Shown piece by piece: positions 28,240 through 61,300 of a DNA stretch of 64,000 bases. Each line of letters opens with the position of its first letter. The stretch's first letter is position 1. The notes beneath the pieces are model-generated. The model was not told the DNA's origin, did no database searches, and worked only from the letters and a program-made list of their open reading frames with translations. The position numbers and the translations under genes were made by a program. The stretch lies in the IMG/VR virus record IMGVR_UViG_3300025121_000011, positions 62,001-126,000 of that record, one strand, 5' to 3'.

Positions 28240-28248
28240 GGAGATTAA

Positions 28249-38100: not shown

Positions 38101-38590
38101 GGAAGATATTGCAGAAGAAGAAGCTGAAGAAGAAGTTGAAGAGCACGAAGAAGATATGCATGGTGGGAAAGATGAAAATGATGCAAATGACGTAGTCCCA
38201 AATGATGGCGTTCAGGGTGCGTCTTTTGTAGTTGAAAAACTTCCATCACCACGCGCTGCAATAGCTAAAAAGTTGATTGAAAGAAAAGCGGCAGAAGAGA
38301 AGGAGGCCGTTAAACTTCGGATGAGAAGAGCTTATGACTTAGCAATGGATATGCAACGCAAGGGTTTGATTGCTCCAACTAGAGCATCATTAGATAGCCA
38401 AGTAGATTTGGTTTTAGAATTTGATGACAAAGCCTTTGAAGCATTTAAACGATCTATAGCTAATGCGAGAATGCCTGAGACTATTAAGGTTGCTAGTGAT
38501 CTTGGCGGATTAAACATAGGTTATGAAACACCTGAGGATGCACCACAAAGATCAATGGTAGAAAATCTTTCTGCATTATTCAACAAATAA
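35135..38590 (+). CDS. prohead protease/scaffold polyprotein
   Basis: N-terminal NNNGDIF..G.PLCVDH..RGIILD..SMG..CSDCG..EYSLV..PA; acidic coiled-coil C-terminus; lies between portal and capsid genes. Confidence 0.75.
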   Translation: MSTSGFIKIGYSSGNVVKEVSSDIVAASPHILARLEKLANTSKVLAPKSDDFLYFTIIFLKAAESALVDDDGNLKKVGHERAWGYFDDKYHWHGNVPAHKNNNGDIFPESELKKAARDWIGTPLCVDHKSESVDGIRGIILDTYYDEKHKQVVGLCALDKVNYPNLARKVQTGVVRYGSMGTAVTTSICSDCGNRATTPKEYCVCVTARSAYGEVNIGLKPMEYSLVVQPAEPGARLLRCIASIGEHKAELSNYGVSDFEKFSAQLSLGQAEELDQILKVACGPRGCSVTQRQSIVNNYLHKYNLVKTAEEGGLRWSENREVQFAKALSQLRDAGASDSDISDLYESFGKSYDDSLENNMSVGQGETFSSGQDASGRAAIETVDNEGVRGTGGESTGLVASDNGENIDTFQTGGVGPETYAFSSLDKNKTHKNIMEEIMNDSKLNKRAELRRRIAYYYGGAAGDGKAEPVEPSTFTSEDYKKYWMDDKHMHQDKAMGGQDGMFPGDEQVKEQQKRAQLAQRRLERKAYFYGGAAGDGKAEPVEPSTFTSEDYKKYWMDDKHMHQDKAMGGQDGMFPGDEQVKEQQKRARLSTKFKQVRALNGAINKQASCFEVYADDKLILATTAKDIYGPKLEENWKFLTSKEYGKAVVAAIRTDGLRSVAGKLTRLGQADPMAGLGAPPAAPGALDAPMPEEAPLPEESIMPEEDPEAGAEDIDEEDPQAKASDALVVVEEAFADLKEAIEDLGSGKGGVEVNIDTDADKPVDEITNLSRNLLKDMKIVLAESSESADELALIIEAYDHKNRISPKKYSELKSLTASALEDSAQLTSEARTLLKMAKIVSSAMVKTSEYVEEAEDSAKEREEVATKEPSGKDTSKAASKAESELFAQALNLRKQRRLALLESARKKIAMEALDSDEVENESPDLNEADDGAGHAQRVAESTPKGDSDKAGAPAVPVGTPQEVANKAPTGNLADDGKFNLADDKENEMEDIAEEEAEEEVEEHEEDMHGGKDENDANDVVPNDGVQGASFVVEKLPSPRAAIAKKLIERKAAEEKEAVKLRMRRAYDLAMDMQRKGLIAPTRASLDSQVDLVLEFDDKAFEAFKRSIANARMPETIKVASDLGGLNIGYETPEDAPQRSMVENLSALFNK
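36500..36898 (+). repeat. two direct repeats (period 216 nt) encoding near-identical 61-aa peptides
   Basis: Y(Y/F)YGGAAGDGKAEPVEP...GMFPGDEQVKEQQKRA at 36500-36682 and 36716-36898. Confidence 0.97.
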
Positions 38591-38605: not shown

Positions 38606-39205
38606 ATGATTGGAAATAGATTTAATGGCGATAATATCGCCGCAGAGTTTCAGAGGATTCTTCAGAAACATAATCTGGAAAAAAAGGCTCAAGCTCTTTT
38701 TGATTCTTCTGCCGAAGATGATCCTATAGAGAATATATTGAATTCAGGAGAGGATGAAGAGTTTGATGATTCCTTATCTGATCCAGAGTCTTTTTTGATG
38801 GCTGATGAATTACATGCAGATAATATTAGTGGGGCTCTAGATGGAAACATCAAAGCATTAGATGGTATATCTGAATCTTGCCCTATTTGTGGTAAAAGAG
38901 TATGTAATTGTTCAGATAATAAAGCTGTTTCTGCAAATGAATATTTTGATACCACAGCTAATCATATTTTGACTGGACTTGGAAAGATTGCTGGAAGCTT
39001 AAAGTTAAAAGGTCATAACTTTGCTGCGGATATTGTGGAGGCTACCGCCATGGGTATAAAAGATGATTTTATAAAAGAAGCATCTGCAAAAATGGCTGTC
39101 GCCGTAGAACTTAAAAAAATGGCTAAAGATTTATCTAAATCAGGAAATCAAATGGCTGCTGATATGGTTCTTGCTACAATTGATAATATCAAGAAAACCT
39201 CTTAA
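38606..39205 (+). CDS. putative head protein with two copies of the 20-aa tag
   Basis: LGKIAGSLKLKGHNFAADIV and LKKMAKDLSKSGNQMAADMV; LEKKA site; CPICG..CNC. Confidence 0.6.
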   Translation: MIGNRFNGDNIAAEFQRILQKHNLEKKAQALFDSSAEDDPIENILNSGEDEEFDDSLSDPESFLMADELHADNISGALDGNIKALDGISESCPICGKRVCNCSDNKAVSANEYFDTTANHILTGLGKIAGSLKLKGHNFAADIVEATAMGIKDDFIKEASAKMAVAVELKKMAKDLSKSGNQMAADMVLATIDNIKKTS

Positions 39206-40640: not shown

Positions 40641-43298
40641 ATGAAAATAAATCGCGCAGGTTCCTCAGAAATATTTGATATTTATTCTGATATAATGCAA
40701 AAATATTTGACCAAAAAAGCTGGTAAAGCAACGGAAGTTGGTGAAGCTTTATTTAAAGAATTATTTCCATCTGCTACTAAAATATCTTTTGATTCTTCCC
40801 AACAACTTTTAGAAGTTTTTACGAAAGTCACCGAAGGGAAATCTTTACCTGCTATCGGTAGAAAACTTAGATTTATTGGGGAACAGCTTTCTAATAATGG
40901 ACCTAAGTTGACAGATCCAAACTGGATAGATACTTCGGAAGATTTTATACAAGAAGCAGTAATGAATTGCGAAGATGTATTAGATGCTATTAAAGGGATT
41001 TCTATAAATGATACAGAGTCTGCTAAATTAGTTGCATATATGCAGCGAGTCGTCTCAAAAGAAGGCCCAGATCAAGTTGCGCTTTTAGAAGTAGCCTCAA
41101 GACGTTTAAAGACCATAGGTCCTCCAAAAGTAGAACCTTCAGTTACTCCAAAAGTAGAACCTTCAGTTACTCCAAAAGTAGAACCTCCAGTTGCTCCAAA
41201 AGCAGAACTTCCAATTGCTCCAAAAGCAGAACCTCCAATTGCTCCAAAAGTGCAGTCTCCCGCTCAACCAGCGGCTGGTATAAGAGGTCGAGGCGTCCCG
41301 GTGGCTCCAAAACCAAAGCCACTTCAAGAAGGCGAGTTGGGCGCAAGAATTCGACAAAATTCTGCTCCAAAAGTAGCAGTTACAAAAGCTAAGGTTGAGC
41401 AAGCTACTGGTGTAGCTATGCCAGCTAAAGCTGTAGAGTCATTAGATAATAGCGTTGAAATTGCTGCCAGACTTGGTGCGATGGAAGCTTCTATTGCAGA
41501 ATTATCTACTGCCGCCGCACGTTCTGGAGAAGAAACTAAACGAGCAATTCAGCCAGTTATAGAGTCATTAAAACAAGAATCTGCTGAATCTGCTCAAAAA
41601 TTGCAAAGTATTGCAGATGAAGTCGCTCAAATACACACAGATAAAGCAAAAATAGCAAAGGGCTTATCTGACGAACAAGCAAAAGCTGTCAAAAAGATGG
41701 TGGAAAAAGAGACTAAAAGTTTGGCCACAGCTTCCAAGAAGGCTGGTGCCGAAGAGTCAAGTAGACTTTTAAAAAATACAGAGATTGCTCAAAATTTTTC
41801 AGCCGCTGTTCAAAAGGGAGTGGTAGGAAAATTTTTACTCGGAGTTGCAGGACCACTAGCCCTTAAAGGGCTGGGTATAGCCGCAGTATTGGGTTTATTA
41901 GCTTGGGGTGGAATATCGTTGTGGGATTACTTATCTAATCCTGATAATAAAGATGACCTACAAACATATCAAACCAGCGTTTCAGATTTGGGAAAAGCAA
42001 TTGCTGCCGCTAGAGCTGCTCATGGAACGTTACGTTTTAATCAAAGAACTTATGGTAACGAACAGAATATAGATGTTTTGGATGAATTAAAAGATAATGA
42101 AGAGAGTGCTTCTATTTTAATGGAACCAAAAGATCCGGCCGCTATGATAATTGCCGCAAAACAAACGGAAGAATTAAAAGCTGAAATTACGGAATTTTTA
42201 ACAAATCAAGAAGCTCTTAGAGGTGACTTGGCTTCTCTAGATGGCTTCCAAGAGACTATTCAGGCGGATCAGCAACTGCTGAGTGCTTTAGAACATTGGA
42301 GACAGGTGGTAATCGACATTTACCCAGCCGCTGAATCTGCAATTAGTGCAGGAGCTGGAAGTGCTAATATTGGTGCAGCCACAGGACCTATTGCAGAAAG
42401 TAGACCCGGAGCCTCAACTGGAGCCTCAACAGATCTTGGTTCTGGATCTGATAATCCTATTATTTTAGATGTTTATGGAGAAAAAATAGATATCTCAAAT
42501 AAACCACCAGGATTTAGAAGTGCGGCTTTTAGAATTGCAAGTGATTTATTACAAACTCCATTAGGTATGGCCTTTATGGATCCGGATAATAGATGGGGAG
42601 GTTTTATCAGGAAAACTGGTAATCCACAAATTGATTATTTAAATTCTTTAGGTTATCTTTATAAAGAGGGCGTATTTAATCGTTCTCAATTAAGAAAGTT
42701 TATTCGACATTCATTACCCAAACAAGGACGCCGCAGACATAGTGGATGGAAAAATGCTATAAATTATTATCGTAATAATCCAGTTTCACAAAAAGTGGCT
42801 GAAAATCTATTACTTTCACAGAGTTTTATTAAAGAATCTACTAATAGATTAAACATTGGTATGAGGAAAATGGCAGATCAATATCCAAATAAGTATATAA
42901 GTGATGCTATTTCTGGTCTTTCAGATCAATATTCTAAGTTATATTATGCAGGGCTTAAAAGCATGTATAATCAGAAGAGGGAGAATGTAAAGGCTGATTA
43001 TTCTGATCTTTATGATGTTCATAAAGAGAAGGGTGCAGACTTAATTCACGAAGCACATCCAAATGCTATTGTTGTTTCTGATGCAATGGGAAATGGGGGC
43101 TTAGTGGAAAATTTGCTAGAGCAAAAATCACATTCTGAAGGTGTGGCTAAGAGCGCTCCTACAGGAAACTTTCGAGGAAAACACGCTGATCTCGCAGTGA
43201 TTGACGCTTTGATTAAAATTGCAAATCAAGCTGATAATGACGGACTTTTTGAAGTTTCTAAAATGATAGATTCAACGATTGAATCTATTCTAAATTAA
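40641..43298 (+). CDS. large putative internal virion protein (Pro repeats, coiled coil, hydrophobic segment, C-terminal tag)
   Basis: PKVEP repeats; LLGVAGPLALKGLGIAAVLGLLAWGG; LIKIANQADNDGLFEVSKMI. Confidence 0.6.
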   Translation: MKINRAGSSEIFDIYSDIMQKYLTKKAGKATEVGEALFKELFPSATKISFDSSQQLLEVFTKVTEGKSLPAIGRKLRFIGEQLSNNGPKLTDPNWIDTSEDFIQEAVMNCEDVLDAIKGISINDTESAKLVAYMQRVVSKEGPDQVALLEVASRRLKTIGPPKVEPSVTPKVEPSVTPKVEPPVAPKAELPIAPKAEPPIAPKVQSPAQPAAGIRGRGVPVAPKPKPLQEGELGARIRQNSAPKVAVTKAKVEQATGVAMPAKAVESLDNSVEIAARLGAMEASIAELSTAAARSGEETKRAIQPVIESLKQESAESAQKLQSIADEVAQIHTDKAKIAKGLSDEQAKAVKKMVEKETKSLATASKKAGAEESSRLLKNTEIAQNFSAAVQKGVVGKFLLGVAGPLALKGLGIAAVLGLLAWGGISLWDYLSNPDNKDDLQTYQTSVSDLGKAIAAARAAHGTLRFNQRTYGNEQNIDVLDELKDNEESASILMEPKDPAAMIIAAKQTEELKAEITEFLTNQEALRGDLASLDGFQETIQADQQLLSALEHWRQVVIDIYPAAESAISAGAGSANIGAATGPIAESRPGASTGASTDLGSGSDNPIILDVYGEKIDISNKPPGFRSAAFRIASDLLQTPLGMAFMDPDNRWGGFIRKTGNPQIDYLNSLGYLYKEGVFNRSQLRKFIRHSLPKQGRRRHSGWKNAINYYRNNPVSQKVAENLLLSQSFIKESTNRLNIGMRKMADQYPNKYISDAISGLSDQYSKLYYAGLKSMYNQKRENVKADYSDLYDVHKEKGADLIHEAHPNAIVVSDAMGNGGLVENLLEQKSHSEGVAKSAPTGNFRGKHADLAVIDALIKIANQADNDGLFEVSKMIDSTIESILN
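41122..41252 (+). repeat. 24-nt tandem repeat (about 5.5 units; PKVEPSVT/PKAEPPIA)
   Basis: ctccaaaagtagaaccttcagtta units that diverge along the array. Confidence 0.9.
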
Positions 43299-43996: not shown

Positions 43997-45010
43997 ATGT
44001 TTAATACACAAGGCGAATTAAGCGCAAAAAACGTAAAAGATGCTTTGGCCCAGATCGTAAGGTATGCGTCAATTATTGAAGAGTTAGCACCTTCTAGTTC
44101 AGCTCTATCTCAAGGTTCCTCACTAAATGAAGAGCAGAGAGATGAGATGATCAAGCAAGCTCTAATGACTCAAGAAGGCAAAATTGCTTTAGGTCAGGCT
44201 ATGGCCAACCCAATCCGAAGAAACCTTGACTATCAGGGTGTAGGACGAAAGGCTCTCGTAGTCGATCCCCTCCCACAAGGTGCTTTGCCAATATATGACC
44301 GCGATATTGATGTTGGTGCAGTTGTTATTTCTAGTAACGGTACCGCTCCAGAATCACGCGTTTTTGGTGACAGAGTAACTATTCCTGAGTTTGAAGTGGT
44401 TTCTAACCCAACTGTCCGTATTGCTGAAGTCAAGCGTCGGAGATTTAATGTTATCGATCGTGCCCAGCAAAAGGCTCGTCAGGAAATTCAAGCCCAGGAA
44501 GACAAGAACGTATTTGCTGCTCTTGATTTCGCAACTGATAGTGCTAAAGGTGGAGAGAATGCCTACCAGCGTTTAGATAATACTACAACTGCTGATGAAC
44601 TTTCAAAGCAGGGCCTTTTGGCTCTAAAGCGTCAAGTTGATCGGTGGGACCTGGTAACTTCTAAATATTTTATGCATATCAACGAATTTACCGATATGCT
44701 CAATTGGGAATCTGCTGGTGCTGCTGGTGCTTCACAGGTAGATCCTGTTACTCAGCGTGAATTGCTACAAACTGGCCTTTATGGCTCAATCTTCGGTGCC
44801 GACATCATCGTCTCTAAGGTTGTTGAGAACCGTCAGGTTTTCGCAGTTGCAGATCCTGAGTTCGTAGGTGTTATGCCTATTCGCCAGGACATAGAAGTAT
44901 TACCCGCTGACGAACCTAAACAATTGAAGTTAGGCTGGGTGGTGAGTGAAATAATAGGTATAGGTATCGTCAATCCTCGTGGCGCTGCAAGTGGTTATGT
45001 GACTGATTAA
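43997..45010 (+). CDS. major capsid protein (HK97 fold)
   Basis: ALGQAMANPIR, P.FEV.SNP.V, IQAQED, G.IFGADI..S; strong SD, optimised codons, strong downstream terminator. Confidence 0.85.
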   Translation: MFNTQGELSAKNVKDALAQIVRYASIIEELAPSSSALSQGSSLNEEQRDEMIKQALMTQEGKIALGQAMANPIRRNLDYQGVGRKALVVDPLPQGALPIYDRDIDVGAVVISSNGTAPESRVFGDRVTIPEFEVVSNPTVRIAEVKRRRFNVIDRAQQKARQEIQAQEDKNVFAALDFATDSAKGGENAYQRLDNTTTADELSKQGLLALKRQVDRWDLVTSKYFMHINEFTDMLNWESAGAAGASQVDPVTQRELLQTGLYGSIFGADIIVSKVVENRQVFAVADPEFVGVMPIRQDIEVLPADEPKQLKLGWVVSEIIGIGIVNPRGAASGYVTD

Positions 45011-45041: not shown

Positions 45042-45075
45042 AAATCCTCCAAAAGAAATTTTGGAGGATTTTTTT
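45042..45075 (+). terminator. rho-independent terminator after the capsid gene
   Basis: AAATCCTCCAAAA-GAAA-TTTTGGAGGATTT followed by Ts. Confidence 0.9.
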
Positions 45076-45214: not shown

Positions 45215-46630
45215 ATGAATGATAATTTTGATACCAAAACATGCTCTGCGTGCAAGCAAACAAAATCAATATCTGAATTTGGAAAAGATAAATATAATTT
45301 AGATAATTTAAAATCTCAATGCAAAGCATGTTGCCATGATATTTATTTAAAACGAACTTCAGATCCTGCAAAAAAACAAAAAATGATAGATACGAGAGAT
45401 AAGTGGAGAATCGAAAACAAAGAGCATTATAATGCAAGCGCCCTTGAGCATTATCATTTAAATAAAGATAAAATTAATGCAAAACGAGCTGAAAAGCGAA
45501 AAAAATTAAAAAGTAATAAAATTAAAGAGCCTATAAATATTAACCTATTAACTCATAAAACCTGTAAGAAGTGTGAACAGAGATTATCATTAGTTGATTT
45601 TGATCATAATAATATAACCAAAGATGGTTATGAGAATAGTTGTAAATCTTGTCGAAAAGAGCAAAGACGCAAAAGTGTTTTAAAAAAACAACAACAGATT
45701 GCGTTCGGAATAGTACAGGCTCCAACTATTAAAAAATGCAAAGTATGTCAACAAACCTTATTGATAGATTCTTTTAATAAAGATTCTTCTAGAGGTGATG
45801 GTTATGAAACGGCTTGTAAAACTTGTAAAAGTAAATTACATTCTAAATATATTTCAAATCCAATAAATAAAAGAAAATATCTATTAAAAAGCAAAAAATG
45901 GAGACTGGAAAATTTAGAACACTATAAAAGAGTAAATAAAAAATACTATATAGTACACAGAGAGGAAAGATTAAAAAAGAATGCAGAATATCACAAAACA
46001 GATAATGGCCGATGGACAAGTCTTATTTGTCAGGCAAATTATCGCAAAAAGAATGTTTCTATCTCTATGAGTGAATTTTTGGAAATAACTTCTAAGCCAT
46101 GTAGATATTGTGGTATATTAAATAATAATGGTATTGATAGAATAGACTCTAGTAAAGGATATGAAATAAATAATTGTGCTCCATGCTGTACGCGATGCAA
46201 TTATATGAAAAATGCATTAAGTGAATCTGAATTCTTTAATCATCTTCGTAAAATATCTTCTTATCAAGAAACCGGAGAAATAGAAGATGTTCTTCCTCAT
46301 GTAAAATATTCTGGTAATATAACGAAAGATATGTATCTTACACCAACCGCAAGATATAATGTGCACAAAAGAAGAGCGAGAAAGAAAGGTTTTCAATTTG
46401 CTTTATCATATACTTATTTTATTAAGTATTGGCAAAAACCATGTCATTATTGTGGCTCTGTTATAAATACAATTGGATTAGATAGAGTAAACAACGATGA
46501 AGGTTATATTCCGGAGAATATTGTTTCTTGTTGTCAAACGTGTAATTCTATGAAATCTGTTTCTCTACAATCAGATTTTTTAAATCACGTACAAGCAATT
46601 TTAACCTTTTTGCAAAATAATATTAAATAA
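45215..46630 (+). CDS. HNH endonuclease with three CxxC..CxxC modules and two HNH-like domains
   Basis: CRYCG..GIDRIDSSKGY..CCTRCNYMK and CHYCG..GLDRVNNDEGY..CCQTCNSMK. Confidence 0.8.
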   Translation: MNDNFDTKTCSACKQTKSISEFGKDKYNLDNLKSQCKACCHDIYLKRTSDPAKKQKMIDTRDKWRIENKEHYNASALEHYHLNKDKINAKRAEKRKKLKSNKIKEPININLLTHKTCKKCEQRLSLVDFDHNNITKDGYENSCKSCRKEQRRKSVLKKQQQIAFGIVQAPTIKKCKVCQQTLLIDSFNKDSSRGDGYETACKTCKSKLHSKYISNPINKRKYLLKSKKWRLENLEHYKRVNKKYYIVHREERLKKNAEYHKTDNGRWTSLICQANYRKKNVSISMSEFLEITSKPCRYCGILNNNGIDRIDSSKGYEINNCAPCCTRCNYMKNALSESEFFNHLRKISSYQETGEIEDVLPHVKYSGNITKDMYLTPTARYNVHKRRARKKGFQFALSYTYFIKYWQKPCHYCGSVINTIGLDRVNNDEGYIPENIVSCCQTCNSMKSVSLQSDFLNHVQAILTFLQNNIK

Positions 46631-47166: not shown

Positions 47167-48480
47167 ATGATTTATCGATATGCAAAACCAGAAGCTATTG
47201 CTATTTGGTCAGATCAACGCAAATACAGTATCATGCTGGAGATTGAATTATTGGCATGCGAAGCAATGGAAGAAATTAAAGAAATCCCAGATGGAATTGC
47301 GGCAGCTTGTCGTTTGGGTTCAAAATGTTTATTGCCAGATAAGTTTCCTGTAGAACGTATTATCGAAATTGAAAATACAACAAAGCATGATGTTATTGCT
47401 TTTTTAACTATGATAAACGAAACTATTGGAGAATCGGCCCGATATCTACATAAAGGAATGACAAGCAGTGATGTATTAGACACAGCTTTTGCAATACAAC
47501 TAAAAGAGTCTGGAGAATTAATATTAAATTCTTTAAATAATGTATTACAAATATTAGAAGCGTTGTCTCATAAACATGCTTTTACTTTATGTATGGGTCG
47601 TAGTCACGGAATCCATGCTGAACCAACAACCTTCGGAATGAAGATGGCTATATTATGGGATCAATTACGGAGAGATAAAGAGAGATTGTCTCGGGCCACA
47701 AAAGAAGTTGCTGTTGGTAAATTGTCCGGTGTAGTTGGAACATTTGCTCATCTAGATCCAAGAATAGAGGAATACGTTTGTCAACACTTGGGGTTAACTC
47801 CTTCTCCAATTTCAAATCAAATCATTCAAAGAGATCTTCATGCTCACTATTTTCATTGTCTCGCGTTGTTAGCAACTTCAATTGAAAAAATTGTGGTTGA
47901 AATTCGTAATCTTCAACGCACAGAAATTATGGAAGTAATGGAGCCATTTTCTGATGGCCAAAAGGGTAGCTCTGCGATGCCTCATAAGAGAAATCCTATT
48001 CTTAGTGAAAATCTTTGTGGGTTAGCCAGACTTGTCCGTGGTTATGCAGATTCTGCAATGGAAAATGTGGTATTATGGCATGAGCGAGACATTTCTCATT
48101 CTTCAGTGGAACGGGTTATAGGCCCAGATGCTACGGTTACGGTACACTTTATGTTAGAGAGATTAAATGAGATCTTATCTGGATTGCAAATCCTACCTAA
48201 TAATATGCTTAAAAATATAGAACTGACTGGTGGCGCCTTTGTAGCTCAACGTATAATGTTAGCGTTAGTAGAAAAAGGACTATCTCGCGAAGAGGCATAT
48301 ACTTTGGTTCAAAATTGTGCAGCTAAATCTTGGTCAGAAAGTCGCCTACTATATGATGTAGTACTTGAATCATCAGATTTAAAAAAATATTTAAATAAAG
48401 AAGATCTAGATGTATTATTTAATTTGGATTGGTATACTCGTAAAATAGGTAAAATACTTGACAGAGTCTTTACCGTTTAA
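47167..48480 (+). CDS. purB: adenylosuccinate lyase
   Basis: TKHDVIAF, H.GMTSSD, GRSHGIHAEPTTFG, GSSAMPHKRNP, WHERDISHSSVER. Confidence 0.97.
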   Translation: MIYRYAKPEAIAIWSDQRKYSIMLEIELLACEAMEEIKEIPDGIAAACRLGSKCLLPDKFPVERIIEIENTTKHDVIAFLTMINETIGESARYLHKGMTSSDVLDTAFAIQLKESGELILNSLNNVLQILEALSHKHAFTLCMGRSHGIHAEPTTFGMKMAILWDQLRRDKERLSRATKEVAVGKLSGVVGTFAHLDPRIEEYVCQHLGLTPSPISNQIIQRDLHAHYFHCLALLATSIEKIVVEIRNLQRTEIMEVMEPFSDGQKGSSAMPHKRNPILSENLCGLARLVRGYADSAMENVVLWHERDISHSSVERVIGPDATVTVHFMLERLNEILSGLQILPNNMLKNIELTGGAFVAQRIMLALVEKGLSREEAYTLVQNCAAKSWSESRLLYDVVLESSDLKKYLNKEDLDVLFNLDWYTRKIGKILDRVFTV

Positions 48481-48541
48481 TGTGGATTTATAGAAGCAAA
48501 CATATTAATATTTAGCGCTCCCATTAGATGGGAGAAATTTG

Positions 48542-49471
48542 ATGAATCGATTTTATCGTGCTATGCCAATTACAGCAGACAATATTCGACCCGGAGATTA
48601 TTTAACTAAAAATCGTAAGTTTGCAATTGATCACGCCATAACCTCCTCTGTTTACCATGGAGAAGATTATGGCGTTTTTCTTTGTTTAATTCCTGATGAT
48701 ATGTTTAAAGATGCAGATAATCCCGGTGAATATAAATATACAGGCAAAGAATTATTAAAAGCCACTTTAGTGGGAATAGCTAAATATAATAATTCTACAG
48801 CAGATTCAGAATTTCTGAGAGTTAAATTATCTTCATATAGTAATAAAGTTATAAGCCTATATGATTCACTTAAAAAATATAACTTAAATGGATATAAAGA
48901 TGTTTTAAAATTATTGACTTGTTCAAATAATATTAAAAATATGTTAATCTTAATACATCCAGACTGCTCTTTGGAACTTTCCCAAGAGGAATTCGGCAAT
49001 TATGTTAATGTAGTAAAATCTAATATTTCAAAATTTGATCTTGTAATAACAAATTTTTTTTATTCTTATGATTATAGAAATGATCGTTTTATCAAAAAAA
49101 ACCCAAGTCATGATAAATATATAGAATTAAGAGATTTTTTAGAACAGAATACCAAGCATTCTCTTGATACAGAGATGGGAAAAGATGTTTTTGAAAAAAT
49201 AGTTTCAGATATTTTAATTGATAATGAAAATGTCAATATTTACATGTCTGGAGGATATCAGGATTTATGCCTCGCCCAATCATATTCTAATTTTTGCGGA
49301 ATTTTGGATTGGATTATTAAAGATATGAATCATAAAGTTCTGATATATAAACCATTAGTTTTTTACAGAAGAGGAGGAGCTTTTAATCCTTCTGAGAGTA
49401 AATATGATAAAAGTATCAAAGAGGATTGGTGGAAGGATTTAGAGCACGAAGAAGATATAGATACGATTTAA
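48542..49471 (+). CDS. two-domain protein: ADP-ribosyltransferase-like N-terminus plus possible cysteine-hydrolase-like C-terminus
   Basis: FYRA..IRPGDYLT...FAIDHA..GEY; LILIHPD..IYMSGGYQDLCL; ATG at 48542 after GGGAG. Confidence 0.4.
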   Translation: MNRFYRAMPITADNIRPGDYLTKNRKFAIDHAITSSVYHGEDYGVFLCLIPDDMFKDADNPGEYKYTGKELLKATLVGIAKYNNSTADSEFLRVKLSSYSNKVISLYDSLKKYNLNGYKDVLKLLTCSNNIKNMLILIHPDCSLELSQEEFGNYVNVVKSNISKFDLVITNFFYSYDYRNDRFIKKNPSHDKYIELRDFLEQNTKHSLDTEMGKDVFEKIVSDILIDNENVNIYMSGGYQDLCLAQSYSNFCGILDWIIKDMNHKVLIYKPLVFYRRGGAFNPSESKYDKSIKEDWWKDLEHEEDIDTI

Positions 49472-49476
49472 TTATA

Positions 49477-50274
49477 TTAAAGCATTTGGCTTACGGATGC
49501 ATCTATTATTCTAAATTCTCCTGTGACTTTCGATGTGCCTACATTTCCTTTTCTAATTTCACTTAAAGTCATACCTATTTTTTCTCTCAAATCTAATAAT
49601 CTAGAAAATAGTGGATCCATTCTTAAAATATTTATGACATCATCTTTTTCGCATCGTAGTAATTGTGCTGTATATATAGAATTATAACTATATGCAAGTA
49701 TATTTGCTATTAATGGTTTTTTTTCAATATAAAGCGCTTGTTGTTCCAAGGGATATTTCTCGTCTAAATAAGAAGTTAATATAGGAAAGAATCGGTCTAT
49801 ATCTTCATCGTTAGTTATAACATTTACTGCTTCAACCATAATCCAAAAGAAATCCTTAGAATGAGCGTAAACCTTTGGAAATAGACCGCTAAATTCTTGC
49901 TGTAGTTTAAACTCATTTTCATTCATATCATAATAAAGGGAGCTTTTGGAAACTTTTAATACAAAAGCATCATTATTTGGTAAACTATAAACAGCTCTAA
50001 ACGCACCTTCACTAATATATTTAAATCCAAGAGACTTTAGATAATCATTTACGGCTCTTAGAGTAGATTTATTTTGTAATTCATTATTTAATTTATCTAA
50101 TAACCCAGAGGTAAGTCCCAGAAATTCTTCTTCTTCTTGTGTATCTGAAAGCGGTTTCTGTCCTAATTCTTTTTCCCAATCAATAATAGATAAATCATCT
50201 ACTTCTTTTGCTTCATCATTTAATTCTTGAGCACGTAGAAGATTAGATAATATTTTAAGCTTTGAAGTAAACAT
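49477..50274 (-). CDS. protein kinase-like enzyme with N-terminal tag
   Basis: SEGAFRAVY, VLKVS, NENEF, EIRKGNVG, IIDAS. Confidence 0.7.
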   Translation of the reverse strand: MFTSKLKILSNLLRAQELNDEAKEVDDLSIIDWEKELGQKPLSDTQEEEEFLGLTSGLLDKLNNELQNKSTLRAVNDYLKSLGFKYISEGAFRAVYSLPNNDAFVLKVSKSSLYYDMNENEFKLQQEFSGLFPKVYAHSKDFFWIMVEAVNVITNDEDIDRFFPILTSYLDEKYPLEQQALYIEKKPLIANILAYSYNSIYTAQLLRCEKDDVINILRMDPLFSRLLDLREKIGMTLSEIRKGNVGTSKVTGEFRIIDASVSQML

Positions 50275-50296
50275 ACGGTCCTCTTAATAAAAAGAT

Positions 50297-51145
50297 TTAA
50301 AATAATCCTTTATGTGGTTCATCGAAGATAGAAGCATCTAATATCATAAATTCGCCAGTTATTTTAGAAGTTCCAACGTTATCCTGGCGAATCTCATCTA
50401 TGCTTAGCCCTGTTTTATTTGAAACTTTTAATAATCTTAAAAATAAAGGATCGCTCTTAAGAACCGCTTTAACTTCTGTTTCAGTGCAGTGTAATAAGTT
50501 TGCTATAGGTAGCAGATCATATCTATTAAATATACTAAATATATCCGTAACAAGTGGTGAATCATCAGAGTTTTGTTGATCTATAAACGCAGCTATTTTT
50601 GGAAAAAATTTATTTATTTCAGAATTAAATTTTATAACATTTGCTGATTCTATAATAATCCATGAAAAGGAATCTGAATGAGCATAAACTTTTGGAAATA
50701 AACCGCTAAATTCTTGCTGAAGGTAGAACTCATCTTTATTCATTTTAATGCCAGATTCGCCACTTTTTGATATTTTTAAAACAAAATCTTCACTACTTGG
50801 TAAAGAATATACTATTCGAAAGTAGCCACTTCCACTCTCTTTTAATCCTAAATCTATCAAGGACTTTTTGATGTTTTTAATATCATATGTATTTGTATCT
50901 GTAAATGGCTTTTTATTTAGTTCATACAATAGAGAGTTAGATAATCCAAAAAAACTTGCCTCTTCTGGATCAATATCTCCGGCAAATGGTTTTTGATTTA
51001 ACTCTTGTTCCCAATTTATAGCAGAAAGGGTTTCGTCAGTTTCTTCGCCAAAATTATTAAAAAGATTATCTATTGCCTTTGCTTCATCATTTAATTCTTG
51101 AGCCCGTAAAATTTTGGATAACGTATTTAGTTTTGAATGAATCAT
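50297..51145 (-). CDS. protein kinase-like enzyme (paralog) with N-terminal tag
   Basis: GSGYFRIVY, VLKIS, NKDEF, EIRQDNVG, ILDAS; start MIHSKL at 51145 chosen by alignment with the paralog. Confidence 0.7.
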   Translation of the reverse strand: MIHSKLNTLSKILRAQELNDEAKAIDNLFNNFGEETDETLSAINWEQELNQKPFAGDIDPEEASFFGLSNSLLYELNKKPFTDTNTYDIKNIKKSLIDLGLKESGSGYFRIVYSLPSSEDFVLKISKSGESGIKMNKDEFYLQQEFSGLFPKVYAHSDSFSWIIIESANVIKFNSEINKFFPKIAAFIDQQNSDDSPLVTDIFSIFNRYDLLPIANLLHCTETEVKAVLKSDPLFLRLLKVSNKTGLSIDEIRQDNVGTSKITGEFMILDASIFDEPHKGLF

Positions 51146-51193
51146 GCGCTTTCCCATTAATATGTTGGATAATACTCTCATCATATTTCATAA

Positions 51194-51207
51194 TATTAAT
51201 ATTAATA
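51194..51207. promoter_or_regulatory. overlapping palindromic TATTAATA pair, putative bidirectional late promoter
   Basis: TATTAATATTAATA between the divergent kinase and peptidase genes. Confidence 0.45.
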
Positions 51208-51230
51208 GTCATATTGTATAGGAGTAATTA

Positions 51231-51959
51231 ATGCCTTTCAATGTTAAAAGTCCGCCTAATGATTTGAAGAGACTAAGGCTAATTGCATTGGCTTCAATTT
51301 TATCAAAACAAGGATTATATCAAGAAAGTTTAGATGTTTTAGATCTAATGTTTAGCGATTCCGATGAAGACCCTTTTCTTGTTGATGTTTCAGAACATGG
51401 ATTTAAAATAGATGCCAGATGGTTAGTGGATGGTAAAAATATAAAATTGGCTACAGATGTATTAGAATCTTTAAGAAAAGCCGAAGATACTCTTCCTGAT
51501 GGTTATAATTTTTTAATTTTATATGGATACAGAACTCTTGATGAACAGAAGAAAATAGTTAAAACACAAGAGAGGGAATTGAAAGATACTAATCCAGATG
51601 ATTGGCGTGAAAAATTAAAAACTTATACAGGAGGGTATGAAGAACTTAAATTAGATTCAGATAATATTTCATACTTAAATCATAGAAGTGGCCGATCGGT
51701 AGACTTAACTCTTTTATATAAAGATAAAGAAGTAGAGATGGGTTTTGATAAAAATGGAAATGCTAATATGGATCAAAGTGATAGATTAGATTCTGATGAT
51801 ATTGATTTAGATATCAAACAGAATAGAAAAATTCTTGCAGATGCTTTATCTTCTGAAGGTTTTGAGAATTACAAAGAAGAATGGTGGCATTGGGGTTTAA
51901 AAATGAAGGAGGGTGGAGATGAGAAAGAATCTTCTAATTCAGCGGACGTTTTTAATTGA
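51231..51959 (+). CDS. VanX-like D-Ala-D-Ala dipeptidase (M15D) with N-terminal tag
   Basis: YGYRT..EQ, NHRSGRSVDLTL, EMG, NR.IL...GF.NY.EEWWHW. Confidence 0.85.
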   Translation: MPFNVKSPPNDLKRLRLIALASILSKQGLYQESLDVLDLMFSDSDEDPFLVDVSEHGFKIDARWLVDGKNIKLATDVLESLRKAEDTLPDGYNFLILYGYRTLDEQKKIVKTQERELKDTNPDDWREKLKTYTGGYEELKLDSDNISYLNHRSGRSVDLTLLYKDKEVEMGFDKNGNANMDQSDRLDSDDIDLDIKQNRKILADALSSEGFENYKEEWWHWGLKMKEGGDEKESSNSADVFN

Positions 51960-52380
51960 GGGTAAACCTCAAAGGCAGGTGCCTTTACCAAAAGATTCTG
52001 GACGACGCGGTATACAATTGGTTGAAAAAGATGTAGAAGAATATGATGCTGCTTATAATGATTTTTTTGAATTTCAAAAAGACTTAGATGATATTGAGGC
52101 GGCAAATGAACAACAGCGTCGAGCTGAAATTTATGGCTTCGAAGAATTACAAGATTCGGAATCAAATACATCTCCAGAATTTAAAAAAGAACAAGCTCCA
52201 TCTCCTATTGTTATGGAAGAAGATGAAGATTTAGAAAACTTTTCTCCAATTATAATGGAAGATTTTGATGAGATTCCGACCATTACAGAATTTAAAAGAT
52301 GTTTGTTTACAAAAGAAAATGGGAAGCAGTGCAAGCGACAAGCTCCAAAAACTCATGATTTTTGCTCAGCACATAGATAA
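51919..52380 (+). CDS. acidic protein with a C-terminal CCCH zinc finger
   Basis: CLFTKENGKQCKR...FCSAH; start uncertain (51913 or 51919). Confidence 0.6.
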   Translation: MRKNLLIQRTFLIEGKPQRQVPLPKDSGRRGIQLVEKDVEEYDAAYNDFFEFQKDLDDIEAANEQQRRAEIYGFEELQDSESNTSPEFKKEQAPSPIVMEEDEDLENFSPIIMEDFDEIPTITEFKRCLFTKENGKQCKRQAPKTHDFCSAHR

Positions 52381-52419: not shown

Positions 52420-52656
52420 ATGAATAATATATACATTATATCAGACTTATCGTTAGCTGCTTTTTTATCAATGAAAGGTTTAGAAATTAGAAAAGCTATT
52501 AAGCATAATGATGGTAAATTTAAATTAGATAATCACAACCAAATGGCTGCCCGCTTGTCTTTAGAATATATTAATTCAGATTTTTCTAAATTTGATAATC
52601 AAATAAGATTAATCAAAAAGCTTCTATACAGTAAACAAGGAGTTTATAATGGCTAA
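52420..52656 (+). CDS. small DUF5659-like protein
   Basis: SDLSLAAFL..KG pattern. Confidence 0.5.
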   Translation: MNNIYIISDLSLAAFLSMKGLEIRKAIKHNDGKFKLDNHNQMAARLSLEYINSDFSKFDNQIRLIKKLLYSKQGVYNG

Positions 52657-53572
52657 TAATAGAGACGCAGCAGTACAGGGCCAAGAAGTTCTTCTTCAAA
52701 TTCAATATTATGATGCTAATGGAAAAGAAGTTGATGCAGATGATTCACCCACAATAGAGATTTTAGATCCAAATGGTTCTATAATATTATCTGCCACCTC
52801 AACAGATGTATCAAGAGTAAGCATTGGTCTTTATCAATATACTTATACTGTAGAAGCTGATGCAGAAGTTGATGATTGGGTCGATACCTGGAGTGCAAAT
52901 ATTGATAATGCACCATTTGAAGTGTCATTTTCATTTTCTGTTGTAACAGCAGATAACGCTTTGACCGCAGATACCGGTCCCGGACAGATTACATTAGGTG
53001 ATGATGTTTCTTTAGATTTTTCACAAGAAGAATTAGCAACAATAAATTATTTATTATATTTATTAAAAATTAGACTCAATTCAACAGGTGTTAAACCTTC
53101 TAGAGATAGATTTGGAGCATTCATTACAGATGGATATGGTGAAATAGTAACAGAAACGTGTAATGTTTTTGATGATGAAGCATTAGTAGCCTTTTTAAGC
53201 ATGGCTTTATCTGAATTTAATATGGTGCCCTTCTTTACGGCTTATACATTTGCGGATCAAATTATTAAAACTTTATTCTCTGAAGCAATTGTCGAAGGAG
53301 CGTATATTTTTGCCTTAGCTTCTCAGGCAATTATAGAAAAGGGTAGAGACTTTACAATTTCTGATGGTGGGTTAAATTATCAACCACCACAGTTGGGTGA
53401 CTTTTTACAAACTCATTATAGTAATTGGTTAACTGCATATAGAGAGCGTTTGAAGTTTATGAAGAATAGTATTCGTCCTGGACCACGCGGTTATGGAACT
53501 TATAGCAACCTTTCTAGTGGGGCCCCCGCTTTTCAACGTTTAAGACATTGCCGTTCTAGGCGCATCATTTAA
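52649..53572 (+). CDS. head-tail adaptor/neck protein with Ig-like N-terminal domain
   Basis: GLYQYTY..W.DTW beta domain; FDDEAL..FL..ALSEFN..P; ISDGGL.Y. Confidence 0.6.
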   Translation: MANNRDAAVQGQEVLLQIQYYDANGKEVDADDSPTIEILDPNGSIILSATSTDVSRVSIGLYQYTYTVEADAEVDDWVDTWSANIDNAPFEVSFSFSVVTADNALTADTGPGQITLGDDVSLDFSQEELATINYLLYLLKIRLNSTGVKPSRDRFGAFITDGYGEIVTETCNVFDDEALVAFLSMALSEFNMVPFFTAYTFADQIIKTLFSEAIVEGAYIFALASQAIIEKGRDFTISDGGLNYQPPQLGDFLQTHYSNWLTAYRERLKFMKNSIRPGPRGYGTYSNLSSGAPAFQRLRHCRSRRII

Positions 53573-54276: not shown

Positions 54277-54507
54277 ATGAGTCTAAAAGATGATGGATGT
54301 ATTTTGTCAAGTTCATTAGCAGAACAAGAGTTAAATAAATTATTATTAGAGTGTCACACGTTGCAAGAACACCTTGGGATTACTATAGACAATTTATTTA
54401 ACTCTTTTAAAAGATCATCAATTAATGTGGAGAAACTTTATGATAATAATTCGAGCAAAAAAAATGGGAGTCTTGAAGAGCAAAGTAGAAACATTAGCGC
54501 AGATTAG
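54277..54507 (+). CDS. hypothetical protein
   Basis: AGGAG SD. Confidence 0.5.
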   Translation: MSLKDDGCILSSSLAEQELNKLLLECHTLQEHLGITIDNLFNSFKRSSINVEKLYDNNSSKKNGSLEEQSRNISAD

Positions 54508-54988
54508 ACGTGATTTAAAAGAGTCTCCAATTATTCAGCAGACTTGTAAAGATTATAAATTACCTATAGATATCATTGATGGCATCCCTATAGATTTTAT
54601 AGAGTTAGATGTTTCTGCTAAAACTATTGATTCTAAGATTTATCTTAATGAAGATCTTTTATCTGAAGATTATGATGTTATTATGAGATATGCAATTCAT
54701 GAAGTTACGCACTCTCTTCAGCATATGGAAAGAGAAGATTTGGACAAGGATCCATATGCTGATGATGAATATTTGGATCGTCCAGATGAAAAAGAGGCTT
54801 TTGCTAATCAATTTGCTTTTATGATTGGTGATACAGACTTGGAAGATTTAGACTTAGAAGATATGCTTAATAAATTACAAGGTCCAGCCAAAAAAGATTT
54901 TTTAGAATATATTATTAGACTCTTAGATCATCATGATATTCCTCGTTCTGAGAGGTATGATAAAATTGAGGAAATAATGAAAGCATAG
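54425..54988 (+). CDS. HExxH zinc metalloprotease-like protein
   Basis: AIHEVTHSLQH..YLDRPDEKEAF; start uncertain. Confidence 0.65.
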   Translation: MWRNFMIIIRAKKMGVLKSKVETLAQIRRDLKESPIIQQTCKDYKLPIDIIDGIPIDFIELDVSAKTIDSKIYLNEDLLSEDYDVIMRYAIHEVTHSLQHMEREDLDKDPYADDEYLDRPDEKEAFANQFAFMIGDTDLEDLDLEDMLNKLQGPAKKDFLEYIIRLLDHHDIPRSERYDKIEEIMKA

Positions 54989-57939: not shown

Positions 57940-58381
57940 AGCTATTACACATATTTTCTTTGCTATTATGATTTCTTTTACAATAATTTTTTCTAATATA
58001 GCTTATGGATCAGATGTAATGAAGTCTGGTGCTATTCTACAAGAAGATTCTATCGTATTTTCTGTGGATGAAGCAGATGATCTAAGAAAAAGGATTGAAG
58101 AATTAGAACTAAAGGAGGAGCGCCTAGTGGCTGTTCAAGATCTGATAGTTGTTCAGGAAAAACAAATTAATACTTTAGATGAATTATTAGAAGTAAAAAA
58201 TGCACAAATTACTGAATGGAAGTCTTTAGGTGAACTTCATCAAAATAGAATAAAAGATTTAGAGCGACAAGAAAATTTAAATATTTTACGTAATATTGGA
58301 TACTTAGCCTTAGGAATGGTTGTTGCTGGTGGAGCTATCTATATTGGTGATAAGGTCGGGGATACAGTGGAGACGAATTAA
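57932..58381 (+). CDS. signal peptide + coiled coil + C-terminal TM protein (spanin-like)
   Basis: Hydrophobic N- and C-termini flanking heptad repeats. Confidence 0.45.
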   Translation: MLKAITHIFFAIMISFTIIFSNIAYGSDVMKSGAILQEDSIVFSVDEADDLRKRIEELELKEERLVAVQDLIVVQEKQINTLDELLEVKNAQITEWKSLGELHQNRIKDLERQENLNILRNIGYLALGMVVAGGAIYIGDKVGDTVETN

Positions 58382-61300
58382 TGGCTAAATCAAATTATCC
58401 GGCATCATTGGATACTTCTAAAGAGATCCCAGCCGTAAGAGACAATATTTTAGAGATAGGTTCAGAGGCTATTAATGGCTTACGTACTGCTATTTTTAAT
58501 ATTGAAAAAACTCTTGGAATAAATCCTCATGGAATTGTAGGAAATACTGTATCTAATCGGATTAATATTTCATTGGATGGTAATGGAAATATTAGAAAAG
58601 ATGCTTTAACTTTAGCAAACGTGTTATCTGGTCCAATTACGGATGCTGATGTTTCAAATGTTGCTGCAATTTCTGAAGATAAATTACGACTAGCATTTCC
58701 AACACAAGTTTTACAAGATGAGATTTCTATTGTAAATAGTGAATTATCATCTATAATTGCAGAAATTGTAGCACTATCTACATCTTTAGCTGCTCATTTG
58801 CATAGTGCTGCAATTAATCGTCATAAAGCTGCTGCTATCTCAACTGCCCCCATTACTGCTATAGGTTCTGATACATCGATAATCAATATTGAGGCTGATG
58901 ATGTTCAGGAAGCATTTGAAGATCTTCATAATAGACATATAAATTATACAGGTTCTGGTATTTCTTCAACAAATAATTCACATCAGGCTTATCAAATATA
59001 TTTTGATGATGATGATGTTAATGGACTATTAACAGCGGATGATGTACAAGAAGCTATTGAAAAAACAATTTTATTAACAGATTTACAGACTATAGCCCAT
59101 CAAGGGTTTATGCATACAAATGGATATTTACGAAAAGGATATATTACAGATCCAACAAGTTCATTACTTGGATTAATTTTAGCAGAACAGATATCAGCAA
59201 CATTTTCCACTTCATCTGGAGATTCTGATGGTTTAACTTTAATTACTCCAAATACACCAATTACTTTAAGTGGATTTGATCTTAAGATTGGTGATTTGGT
59301 TTATATAGAAGATATTATTGATATAGATAATTTGTATACTGGTACGTTCCAAATTGCCAAAATAAACCTTTCAACAGATTTATCTAAAGTGCAAAGTGTA
59401 GAAATATGCGCTCTTTTACATGGTGGAAGCACCTCCACCACGAAGGTAACTATAGCTAAAAATCCTCATAAGACTCAAAATGTTGCTGGGTTATTATTAT
59501 CAGTTAGAGAAAAGGCATTGCTCACTTCTGCTAATGCAATTCAAATTGCAAATCCAAATGCAGTGGCCGTTGTATCATCTGGTGTAAAACCATCAGAAAT
59601 AACTAGTACAAATAAATTAATAACATTAAGTGTAGATGGCGCATCTGATATAATCCTAAACCTTTATGATGCGGGCTCTATACATCAATCAGTAGATTCT
59701 ATTATAAAAAGAATCAATGAACAATGTGTTGAATCAAATTATAATTTTTCTGCTTATCGATTAAATCTAGAGGATGGTGGTGTTGAATTTGTTATAGTAC
59801 ATAATCTTCCTGATACAGAGATAATTAATCATACTTTTAAAGTAGGACAAAGTACTGATAATGGTATCGTTGCAGCAGGATTGGATTATATACAAGATGA
59901 AACTTTCTATTCTGAGATTGGCTCAAAATATTATATTGCTGGAATACCATATACTGGACTTAAGGAGAAGCTAAATACTACAGGCTTATCTTTTTTCTCT
60001 GGGAGTACATCTATTTCTATTGGAAATACATCTGTTAATTTTTTAGAATTAGATATTAAAATTGGAGATATTTTAGTTATATCTAATGCAGTAAATAGTG
60101 GAGATAATGGATCTTTTGTTATTTCAGGCATTTCATCTACATCTATTATTTTGAGTTCAGATCAGCTACCAAGCGGTTTTGTTAATGCATCAACTGATAC
60201 CACTTTATTTGAAATTTATGATAGTATTTTAAATTTAGATACATTAGTATTCGATAAAGTATCAGGGGGTTATGGCACAGCGATCGTCGAAGCATATTTA
60301 GATGAAAATCAGAAAGCTCAGTGGAATAAGAGATTGGAATATTCTGCAAGTATTTCTGGAATAGATGCAATTTTTTCTATTGTTGACTATACTGATACCA
60401 TAATAACAGATGATGAATTATCTATAATTATTGAAATAGAAAATAGTGAAGTGAAAATTTCCTTAGATGGTGGAACTAAAACGAGAATTGAAGGAAATGA
60501 TATATATTTATGGATTCACTCTGGAATTGAAAATAGAAGTTTAAAAATTCATATACCAAGTGCAGCAATTTTAGAAGCATATCTTACTATTAATGGCACA
60601 ACCACAACTACAGTTTATGGATTTAATTCTCTTAATCAAAAATCCTCTTTACTACTTGGAAAAATTCCATATAGTAATTTTAAAGGAAGAGTTACAGGTG
60701 GAGTAGGTACAGATAATTCAAGAATTTTTTCATCAATATCCAAGGGTACAGTAGGTTGGGAAGATCTTCATACGCAGGCGATTGCTAATATTATAGAAAG
60801 ACCAATCTATGAAATGCGAACCGGAGGTATTATTCGCGGACTAGAATTAACTGATTGTACTATATCTAGTGGATTATATTCTATTACAATTGATGCAGGA
60901 GTTTGTTATGTGAGAGGTAAAAGATTTGTTTTAGATACCATCACAATTATAACCGACATACCATCCTCTTCTGTAGATAAATTTTATATCGCTGTTAATT
61001 TAGAAGGAGAAATAGTATTTGCTCCAGCTATCTCCGGAAGTTGTAATAATCCCTTTGCTGAAAGTGACTATGTTTTGATAGCCACCATAGAATATGACAA
61101 CACTACTGTTAGGATTTTAGATCTAAGATTGTTCATAAGTAATTTAGATATGAAATTATTAAATGCAGTGTCTGTTTCTCCCGATCCAAAATTTGGACAT
61201 TTTTCTTCATTTCCAAAAGCCGTTAAATATGTAAAAAGATTTTCAGATTTATTTCCAGCTTCTGGTACTCCATCTGTTCATTTGAAATCTGGAGTTCATG

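Follow-up and report, generated by a model that had tools for sequence, protein, structure and literature searches.

What does a short peptide do that recurs on adjacent enzyme-like proteins encoded directly downstream of a phage major capsid gene? Almost all knowledge of huge phages comes from metagenomes, and their genes are for the most part orphans. The phage considered here is represented by a single 335,169-bp virus record (IMGVR_UViG_3300025121_000011; direct terminal repeats, rated 100% complete, 34% G+C), and its sequences originate from groundwater and soil metagenomes. We analysed a stretch of 64,000 nucleotides, bases 62001-126000 of this record (hereafter the window), together with the rest of the genome, in which about 90% of roughly 400 genes lie on the plus strand. 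The initial annotation of the window had recognised an island of four genes encoding an ADP-ribosyltransferase (ART)-like protein with a possible cysteine hydrolase domain (gene 1), two kinases (K1 and K2) and a VanX peptidase. Each was said to carry a common peptide, hereafter the tag, and the island was read as a variable cassette of virion-delivered effectors reminiscent of T4 Alt. The description is partly confirmed: it was largely right, with corrections concerning the tag of gene 1, the cysteine hydrolase and the promoter of the neighbouring gene purB. The interpretation is a good analogy and partly supported, by evidence that neither proves nor excludes it. Judged from sequence, the best-supported explanation is that the tag docks proteins into the virus head for delivery, a reading that we favour tentatively.

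In its canonical form the tag reads M-I-K-E-L-I-K-L-A-N-x-L-D-S-K-G-L-T-K-E-A-D-x-L-D-x-I-I. It spans about 30 residues, is mostly followed by an acidic linker and is charged and non-hydrophobic, with a near-neutral or acidic net charge. The AlphaFold2 (AF2) model of K1 shows it as an amphipathic two-helix hairpin (helices at residues 2-15 and 19-29, with a predicted local distance difference test score (pLDDT) of about 52-74). Tag profiles were grown iteratively from the N-termini of K1, K2 and the VanX homologue. A profile made without the four island proteins still recognised the VanX homologue (5e-6), K1 (6e-5) and K2 (6e-3), so that the tag is independently significant on three of the four proteins, whereas the copy in gene 1 is internal, degenerate and undetected by that profile. 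Across the genome the tag occurs on at least 15 proteins.

An exhaustive comparison of a 32-position profile, derived from 22 tags, with 1.84 billion representative proteins returned 302 cluster representatives at E <= 1e-3; a word-based homologue search with the tag region found just 6 proteins. Tag position was surveyed in the 139 full-length matches among the best 150. The tag starts at or before residue 12 in 119 of them, in most at the initiator methionine, and mostly occupies residues 1-31. IMG/VR records with a capsid protein 81-83% identical to that of this phage contain 9-27 copies each, often in tandem arrays. No tag was found in Bacillus phage G or in 185,579 prokaryote genomes, and tblastn searches of 50,697 cultured phage records with a divergent and a canonical tag gave nothing meaningful. 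Matches of the profile to Protein Data Bank (PDB) sequences were at chance level, the tag corresponds to no family in Pfam or PHROGs, and a literature search with the motif string retrieved unrelated papers only. The tag is phage-only and clade-linked. It constitutes a widespread, phage-restricted peptide module that marks a fast-evolving repertoire of a huge-phage clade and does not appear to have been described.

A shared N-terminus could be a by-product of cassette shuffling, in which a conserved 5' coding stretch mediates recombination or translation initiation while the peptide itself is functionless. The tagged genes are indeed moron-like, having their own promoters, fast locus turnover and an excess on the minority strand (6 of 15, p = 2.6e-4). 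However, conservation is at the amino-acid level: identical tag residues are encoded by the same codon in only 43% of cases; identity is 42% at third codon positions versus 68% at positions 1 and 2. Since synonymous change is free, the tag is conserved as a peptide rather than as DNA or RNA, and a cause at either nucleic acid level was rejected on the codon evidence. Internal and C-terminal copies, and the same residue pattern held by 302 divergent clusters, likewise speak against shuffling, which was already disfavoured and which we consider highly improbable.

The proteins that carry the tag are diverse. All kinase-like proteins found in the genome are tagged: K1, K2, two Pfam-positive protein kinases (at genome positions 3760 and 247725) and a further kinase-like protein (252466). 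Other carriers include a lysin/tape-measure-like protein with two tags and membrane-like, glycine-rich segments (28420). By eye, H-E-x-x-H strings hinting at zinc metallopeptidases were noticed in the proteins encoded at window positions 54425-54988 and genome positions 27023-28417, the second of which also has an internal tag. A 678-residue protein (genome 195563-197599, locus L013) with a weak N-terminal tag displays, again by eye, Y-R-G, F-S-T-D and G-E-H-E-V-G in the R-S-E order of ARTs; it has no match in Pfam, PHROG or NCBIfam. The comparison with T4 Alt is reasonable, with this R / S-T / E-x-E pattern present in another tagged protein. In public data the cargo is overwhelmingly orphan; scattered exceptions include a gamma-glutamyl cyclotransferase, a GDSL lipase that also has a peptidoglycan-binding domain, some lysins and a protein resembling the T7 scaffold. 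As had been suggested for the island, the tag appears to have been fused or added to cargo: it is absent from bacterial VanX, the C-terminal domain of gene 1 occurs tag-free as P0006, and P0008 consists of the ART-like domain fused ahead of a tagged protein, P0013.

Part of this cargo also directs attention to the cell surface. The tag might target the cell envelope or the lysis machinery (a holin, a spanin-type partner or the membrane), in which case the island would represent late genes for lysis or envelope remodelling. Every recognisable peptidoglycan enzyme of the genome is tagged, including the sole lysozyme, as is the GDSL lipase mentioned above, and in a few proteins a hydrophobic stretch directly follows the tag. 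Yet at least five tagged kinase-like proteins and the ART-like proteins have no obvious envelope role, and only 6 of the 119 N-tagged proteins contain a membrane-like stretch. Moreover, because the tag is charged rather than hydrophobic, it reads neither as a signal peptide nor as a signal-anchor-release (SAR) domain. We therefore regard envelope targeting as unlikely, if less so than shuffling.

Three lines of evidence lead us to favour docking into the head. First, the cargo spectrum (kinases, ART-like enzymes, cell-wall hydrolases and a lysin with membrane-like segments) is what phages are known to inject. ARTs and other enzymes encoded beside head genes have already been inferred to be packaged (PMC9503650). 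Second, the island borders on the capsid gene, beside which the tagged kinase gene has a conserved position. Third, an 885-residue head-module protein, which has no match in Pfam or PHROG, has a tag-like hairpin at its C-terminus. The final ~35 residues (about 43200-43283) align with the canonical tag profile in hhalign at a probability of 72% (E 3.3e-5, 28 columns), a likeness that is borderline once the ~400 proteins examined are allowed for. We propose that the tag would act as a docking peptide that binds a component of the assembling head, either a scaffold or the inner capsid surface, in the manner of the T4 capsid-targeting sequence or of a scaffolding protein's terminal hairpin. The capsid would consequently enclose the tagged kinases, the ART-like protein, the cell-wall hydrolases and membrane-active proteins and eject them together with the DNA. 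Their synthesis would be driven by a phage sigma factor reading TA(C/T)TAAT, an element common to the tagged genes and several large structural-type genes.

Several observations weigh against docking into the head. In two relatives (G001 and G002) the frame of the orthologue of the 885-residue protein ends right where the tag-like hairpin would start. At least two tags are present in 45 of the 139 proteins surveyed, often one at each end with acidic linkers between, and internal and C-terminal tags also occur. The large arrays of tagged genes in relatives lie far from the head module and resemble arrays of small accessory genes. The genome's sole Phage_lysozyme match (231300, with LysM), its only recognisable lysozyme, is tagged; if this is the endolysin, its packaging would be odd. 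The TA(C/T)TAAT element also stands ahead of a DNA primase gene. No convincing cleavage motif common to the tagged proteins and the capsid N-terminus was found by eye. Complex prediction for a tagged protein with the capsid protein and a candidate scaffold, run on whole proteins without alignments, scored 0.05 against a mark of 0.34, which is no evidence either way. Finally, the sources that hold this phage are DNA metagenomes only.

Some of these features would suit a different destination. The tag could be a general docking or oligomerisation module that gathers enzymes on an intracellular, phage-built assembly (a hub, a replication or takeover factory, or a condensate) with no packaging, multi-tag proteins being the scaffolds and single-tag proteins the clients. 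The multiple tags with their acidic linkers, the internal tags and the arrays of small tagged genes away from the structural modules of relatives are in line with such a role. So is the amphipathic hairpin, which resembles a single unit of the tetratricopeptide repeat (TPR) type; repeat proteins are among the weak profile matches. Against this, hydrolases with LysM or peptidoglycan-binding domains and membrane-like proteins are ill-suited to a cytoplasmic hub, no candidate hub was identified, and both the kinase gene beside the capsid gene and the tag-like end of the head-module protein point to the head. Docking to another phage-built assembly is the main rival, less probable than docking into the head, and the envelope and DNA-level explanations are less likely still.

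Within the head-docking reading, internal, C-terminal and multiple tags fit a docking module better than a cleavable leader of the T4 type. Proteins with several tags might form a protein body inside the head, to which enzymes with one tag would attach. With somewhat greater reserve than for docking as such, we suggest that the ~30-residue helix-turn-helix is the cargo-loading tag of an uncultured huge-phage clade, whose origin may lie in a docking hairpin at the C-terminus of a head-assembly protein, and that the injected set could then be read from genomes.

The island itself consists, as first described, of four adjacent, non-overlapping genes (Table 1), and K1 and K2 are the sole minus-strand open reading frames of the window that are not nested in a plus-strand gene. 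The architecture of gene 1 was read from its homologues P0005-P0011. Residues 1-98 form a conserved 'FYRAMP' domain that other phages join to quite different C-termini, including a ParB-like one. Its AF2 model is confident (pLDDT 84-91), and in structural comparisons it comes closest to ARTs (TreX, TreTu, pertussis S1, PltA, diphtheria toxin and Arr; Z 5.7-6.8). In AFDB the domain matched a cluster without a name (2.7e-5) and, with probability 1.0, an arginine ART. In the family alignment R7, S36-S37 and E64 are conserved; no ART family profile matches gene 1. The assignment as ART-like is partly borne out for the N-terminal domain, as a confident model places ART toxins at the top, and is tempered by top Z values of only 6.5-6.8; on this structural model it is reasonable but not established.

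Residues 100-128 of gene 1 (48836-48922) correspond to the internal degenerate tag, recognisable only because the copies of orthologues at this position are clearer. The remainder of the protein (residues 130-310) is an alpha/beta domain, the one that occurs alone in P0006. The proposal that this part is a cysteine hydrolase finds no support: the domain has no Pfam match even at E <= 1, its model is of low confidence (pLDDT mostly <60) and its best structural matches are mixed alpha/beta folds with Z of about 6. The idea of such a hydrolase, which would be of the isochorismatase-like kind, had rested only on a G-G-Y-x-D-x-C-L string.

K1 and K2 hold up as kinases at the level of fold. The AF2 model of K1, of intermediate quality (pLDDT 65), retrieved protein-kinase-like structures as all of its top 50 PDB matches in Foldseek (best E 2.2e-4), and T7-type phage protein kinases are among its 47 viral structural matches at E <= 1e-3. 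Small-molecule kinases of the same fold match the model equally well, and Pfam kinase families match neither protein. Close relatives are rare, with only three in 5.8 billion proteins. All four members of the family keep a glycine-rich loop (G-x-G-x-F-R) and the beta-3 lysine (V-L-K), along with an I-I-D-A-S segment. The D-x-K/R-x-x-N catalytic loop has Asp in the orthologues P0003 and the G003 copy but Glu in K1 and K2, whose activity is therefore uncertain. An hhalign comparison of the family with a Pfam-positive tagged kinase gave a sensible N-lobe alignment at E only 0.0027. The first ATG of K2 lies just 10-23 nt from a promoter-like element, which makes Met14, at 51145, the better and likely the true start; this would bring the tag of K2 to the N-terminus.

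The fourth protein was correctly placed among the VanX peptidases as far as family is concerned. It matches Pfam PF01427 at 1.6e-10 (41.6 bits against a cut-off of 27), and in an alignment to the VanX structure 1R44 the equivalents of R71, H116, D123, E181 and H184 are all kept (GYR, H-x6-D and E-W-W-H). At the equivalog level it falls far short, with 45 bits (7.7e-12) against a cut-off of 320 for NCBIfam dipept_VanX (NF033115). Its N-terminus is distinctive in that 74 residues of tag and linker stand in for the first ~43 of VanX. We conclude that it is a VanX-type M15 dipeptidase homologue with a putative D-Ala-D-Ala specificity.

The island is organised in three transcription units, as K1 follows K2 after a gap of 22 nt with a GAGGA ribosome-binding site and is probably co-transcribed with it. 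Each unit is preceded, as originally noted, by the promoter-like element TATTAATA: one copy lies upstream of gene 1, and two overlapping copies occupy the gap that separates K2 from the divergently oriented VanX gene, where they may act as promoters of K2-K1 on the minus strand and of VanX on the plus strand. The palindromic TATTAATA occurs 16 times in the window, compared with 7.2 +/- 2.6 in shuffled sequences. Genome-wide, TATTAAT is the most enriched upstream 7-mer (25 versus 7.7 expected), and TACTAAT is also enriched. TA(C/T)TAAT is found 15-65 nt upstream of 8 of 15 tagged genes compared with 27 of 393 others (p = 5.5e-6), and all eight tagged genes with an upstream gap of their own have it. 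Given their own motif and their excess on the minority strand, the tagged genes behave like self-contained cassettes. The element is likewise present ahead of head-module genes, a gene resembling those of tail fibres and several very large genes, and a search for a -35 partner found none. The phage encodes a sigma-70-family protein (Sigma70_r2; genome ~56.9 kb) and no RNA polymerase beta subunit, and a phage-encoded sigma factor probably reads TA(C/T)TAAT. With the primase gene among those preceded by the motif, a late promoter is a plausible designation and nothing firmer. The absence of a tag from purB was confirmed; its supposed sigma70-type promoter is unsupported, because sigma70-like sites occur at chance level (42 versus 45 +/- 6 in shuffles) and purB begins only 9 nt after the upstream open reading frame.

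The island lies in an interval bounded by the capsid gene on one side and by conserved downstream genes on the other, a slot that we compared in four related phages: this one, G001, G002 and the phage of L003. In G002 the slot holds nothing; in G001, one 440-residue gene, seryl-tRNA synthetase-like by eye; in the phage of L003, a zinc-finger gene and one tagged kinase gene on the opposite strand. In this phage it contains the HNH endonuclease gene, two small open reading frames, purB and the four tagged genes. As the content is different every time, the locus is a true hot spot, bearing out its description as a variable cassette. The HNH/endonuclease VII-like gene, which probably encodes a mobile endonuclease, and purB are both missing from the slot in the three relatives. 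With purB being part of this variable insert too, tagged effectors do not make up the whole island. The most persistent occupant is the tagged kinase gene, which keeps its position and orientation in one relative. Comparison of the region at the DNA level with cultured phages gave short purB-like stretches only, and a search for related loci through purB found two, both of the same phage at 100% identity and without variation. Public sequencing data yielded DNA contigs alone, all identical to the window and derived from groundwater and soil metagenomes, with no RNA and no variant island. 'Joints' reported in the read search were set aside, being based on 21-nt matches that come from other organisms.

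Table 1. Positions of the island, its regulatory elements and neighbouring features, counted from the first base of the window.
Feature	Position	Strand	Remarks
DNA polymerase III alpha-like gene	5116-9333		PHP-type N-terminus, 1405 residues
GroEL-like chaperonin gene	12373-14037		
RecA-like gene	14048-15226		
DNA primase gene	15287-16063		
Large terminase	25366-28239		Head-morphogenesis module
1286-residue protein	28249-32109		Adjoins large terminase
620-residue protein	33210-35072		Head module
1151-residue protein	35135-38590		Head module; head-maturation protease domain
199-residue protein	38606-39205		
885-residue protein	40641-43298	+	Head module, no known family; between protease fusion and decoration/capsid genes; kept in relatives
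Major capsid protein	43997-45010	+	phrog_2522, 1.5e-72
Terminator-like hairpin	45042-45071	+	Strong, 13-bp stem then T run; 3' of capsid gene; left edge of variable insert
HNH/endonuclease VII-like gene	45215-46630	+	Multi-domain; phrog_1035 5.5e-50, several other HNH families match; insert start
purB (adenylosuccinate lyase)	47167-48480	+	Pfam Lyase_1 6.4e-52, ADSL_C 8.8e-20
TATTAATA promoter-like element	48503-48510		36 nt 5' of gene 1
Gene 1	48539-49471	+	310 residues; likelier start ATG at 48542
K1, protein-kinase-like	49477-50274	-	265 residues; tag at residues 2-30 (50185-50271)
Hairpin	49482-49500		Between convergent ends of gene 1 and K1; possible bidirectional terminator
K2, paralogue of K1	50297-51184	-	44% identity to K1; tag at residues 15-43 (51056-51142)
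Two overlapping palindromic TATTAATA copies	51194-51207		Starts 51194/51200; in 46-nt gap between divergent K2 and VanX
VanX-type M15 D-Ala-D-Ala dipeptidase homologue	51231-51959	+	242 residues; tag at residues 12-41 (51264-51353), then acidic linker
First conserved gene right of insert	51913-52380	+	Start uncertain; homologues in all three relatives
DUF5659 gene (Pfam)	52420-52656		Right flank of insert
Conserved 307-residue gene	52649-53572		Right flank of insert
Very large gene	58381-62637		
Very large gene	62640-64000		

The surroundings of the island show further features. Among cultured phages, the nearest relative found is Bacillus phage G, whose gp27 shares 50-51% identity with the capsid protein of this phage. 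In the latter, about 40 extra residues at the N-terminus (43997-44120) have no counterpart in gp27 and are kept in tag-bearing relatives. The large terminase contains a LAGLIDADG homing-endonuclease-like insert (residues ~294-482), and the adjoining 1286-residue gene product has a LAGLIDADG_3 domain; these elements are probably inteins in two packaging or head genes. The 620-residue head-module protein has a DUF192 domain (3.1e-20), unusual for a phage morphogenesis cluster. On the left side of the window, the polymerase-like, chaperonin and RecA-like proteins were recognised by eye from their N-termini, and the DNA primase is backed by PHROG matches. Two successive very large genes at the right end encode proteins with near-identical first ~60 residues (M-A/S-K-S-N-Y-P...D-N-I...E-I-G-S-E), an N-terminus found also in relatives, and may be a fibre-like pair with a common N-terminal attachment region. 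Beyond the window, genome positions 256,000-290,000 contain many short open reading frames on both strands with differing composition. A second repeated motif, of consensus about AAGTTAACTCTAAAAAGATATC, lies 40-85 nt upstream of at least 10 of them and may be another promoter class or a repeat family. Nine tRNA genes are located between 209 kb and 330 kb of the genome.

A short tag marking a functional class across hundreds of protein clusters would organise genes that are otherwise orphans. If it is a head-docking signal, sequence alone would define the 'ejectome' of an uncultured phage clade, comprising kinases, ART-like proteins, cell-wall hydrolases and dozens of orphans; it would also point to candidate host-takeover and anti-defence enzymes and could offer a natural peptide with which to load large capsids with foreign proteins. 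If docking takes place elsewhere, the tag would still represent an undescribed organising principle of infection. Given its absence from Pfam, PHROGs and the searchable literature, recognising it would improve annotation at once.

The individual proteins have recognisable counterparts. The VanX homologue shares with VanX/DdpX (MEROPS M15D) the fold family and all zinc-binding and catalytic residues, and differs in scoring far under the equivalog cut-off, in its tag-plus-linker N-terminus and in being phage-encoded. K1 and K2 share with T7 gp0.7-type phage kinases and the effector kinases NleH and SteC the protein-kinase-like fold, the glycine-rich loop and the lysine strand; by analogy, a role in host takeover is plausible. 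Unlike those kinases, they carry an N-terminal tag, have Glu in place of the catalytic Asp and match no Pfam kinase family. The N-terminal domain of gene 1 superposes on the Rhs toxins TreTu and TreX and on the pertussis-type S1 fold (Z 6.5-6.8 over 83-97 residues), although, in contrast to minimal ART toxins, it is a domain of only about 98 residues, with Z below the level that excludes a merely common arrangement.

With respect to the arrangement of the genes, MuF- or portal-fused effectors and 'polyvalent proteins' include ARTs and host-modifying enzymes whose genes neighbour those for head morphogenesis and which are inferred to enter the host along with the DNA (Iyer et al. 2022, PMC9503650). 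The island similarly places candidate host-modifying enzymes beside head genes, but as separate small proteins with a common short peptide rather than as domains of one large fusion. The capsid targeting sequence of T4 (IPI-III and Alt) offers a closer parallel to the tag: both are short, N-terminal and common to otherwise unrelated proteins, the T-even internal-protein loci also turn over between related phages, the T4 cargo includes an ADP-ribosyltransferase, as the cargo here may do, and the genes stand behind promoters, putative ones in this phage, with a -10-type element only. The T4 late element TATAAATA differs from TATTAATA at one position. In contrast, the T4 sequence has ~10 residues and no sequence similarity to the ~30-residue helix-turn-helix described here, which also occurs in internal, C-terminal and multiple copies and on at least 15 proteins per genome, a number that reaches 27 in relatives. 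In the tagged proteins, for which packaging is a proposal, no cleavage site was recognised.

The C-terminal helix-turn-helix of P22-type scaffolding protein is a coat-binding hairpin of ~30 residues that has been used for engineered cargo loading into P22. No sequence relationship links it to the tag, and whereas the P22 hairpin is basic, the tag is near-neutral or acidic and sits mostly at the N-terminus of its cargo. The resemblance lies in the two-helix hairpin of ~30 residues, a docking unit in P22 and a putative one here, and in the head-module protein of this phage, which itself ends in a tag-like hairpin.

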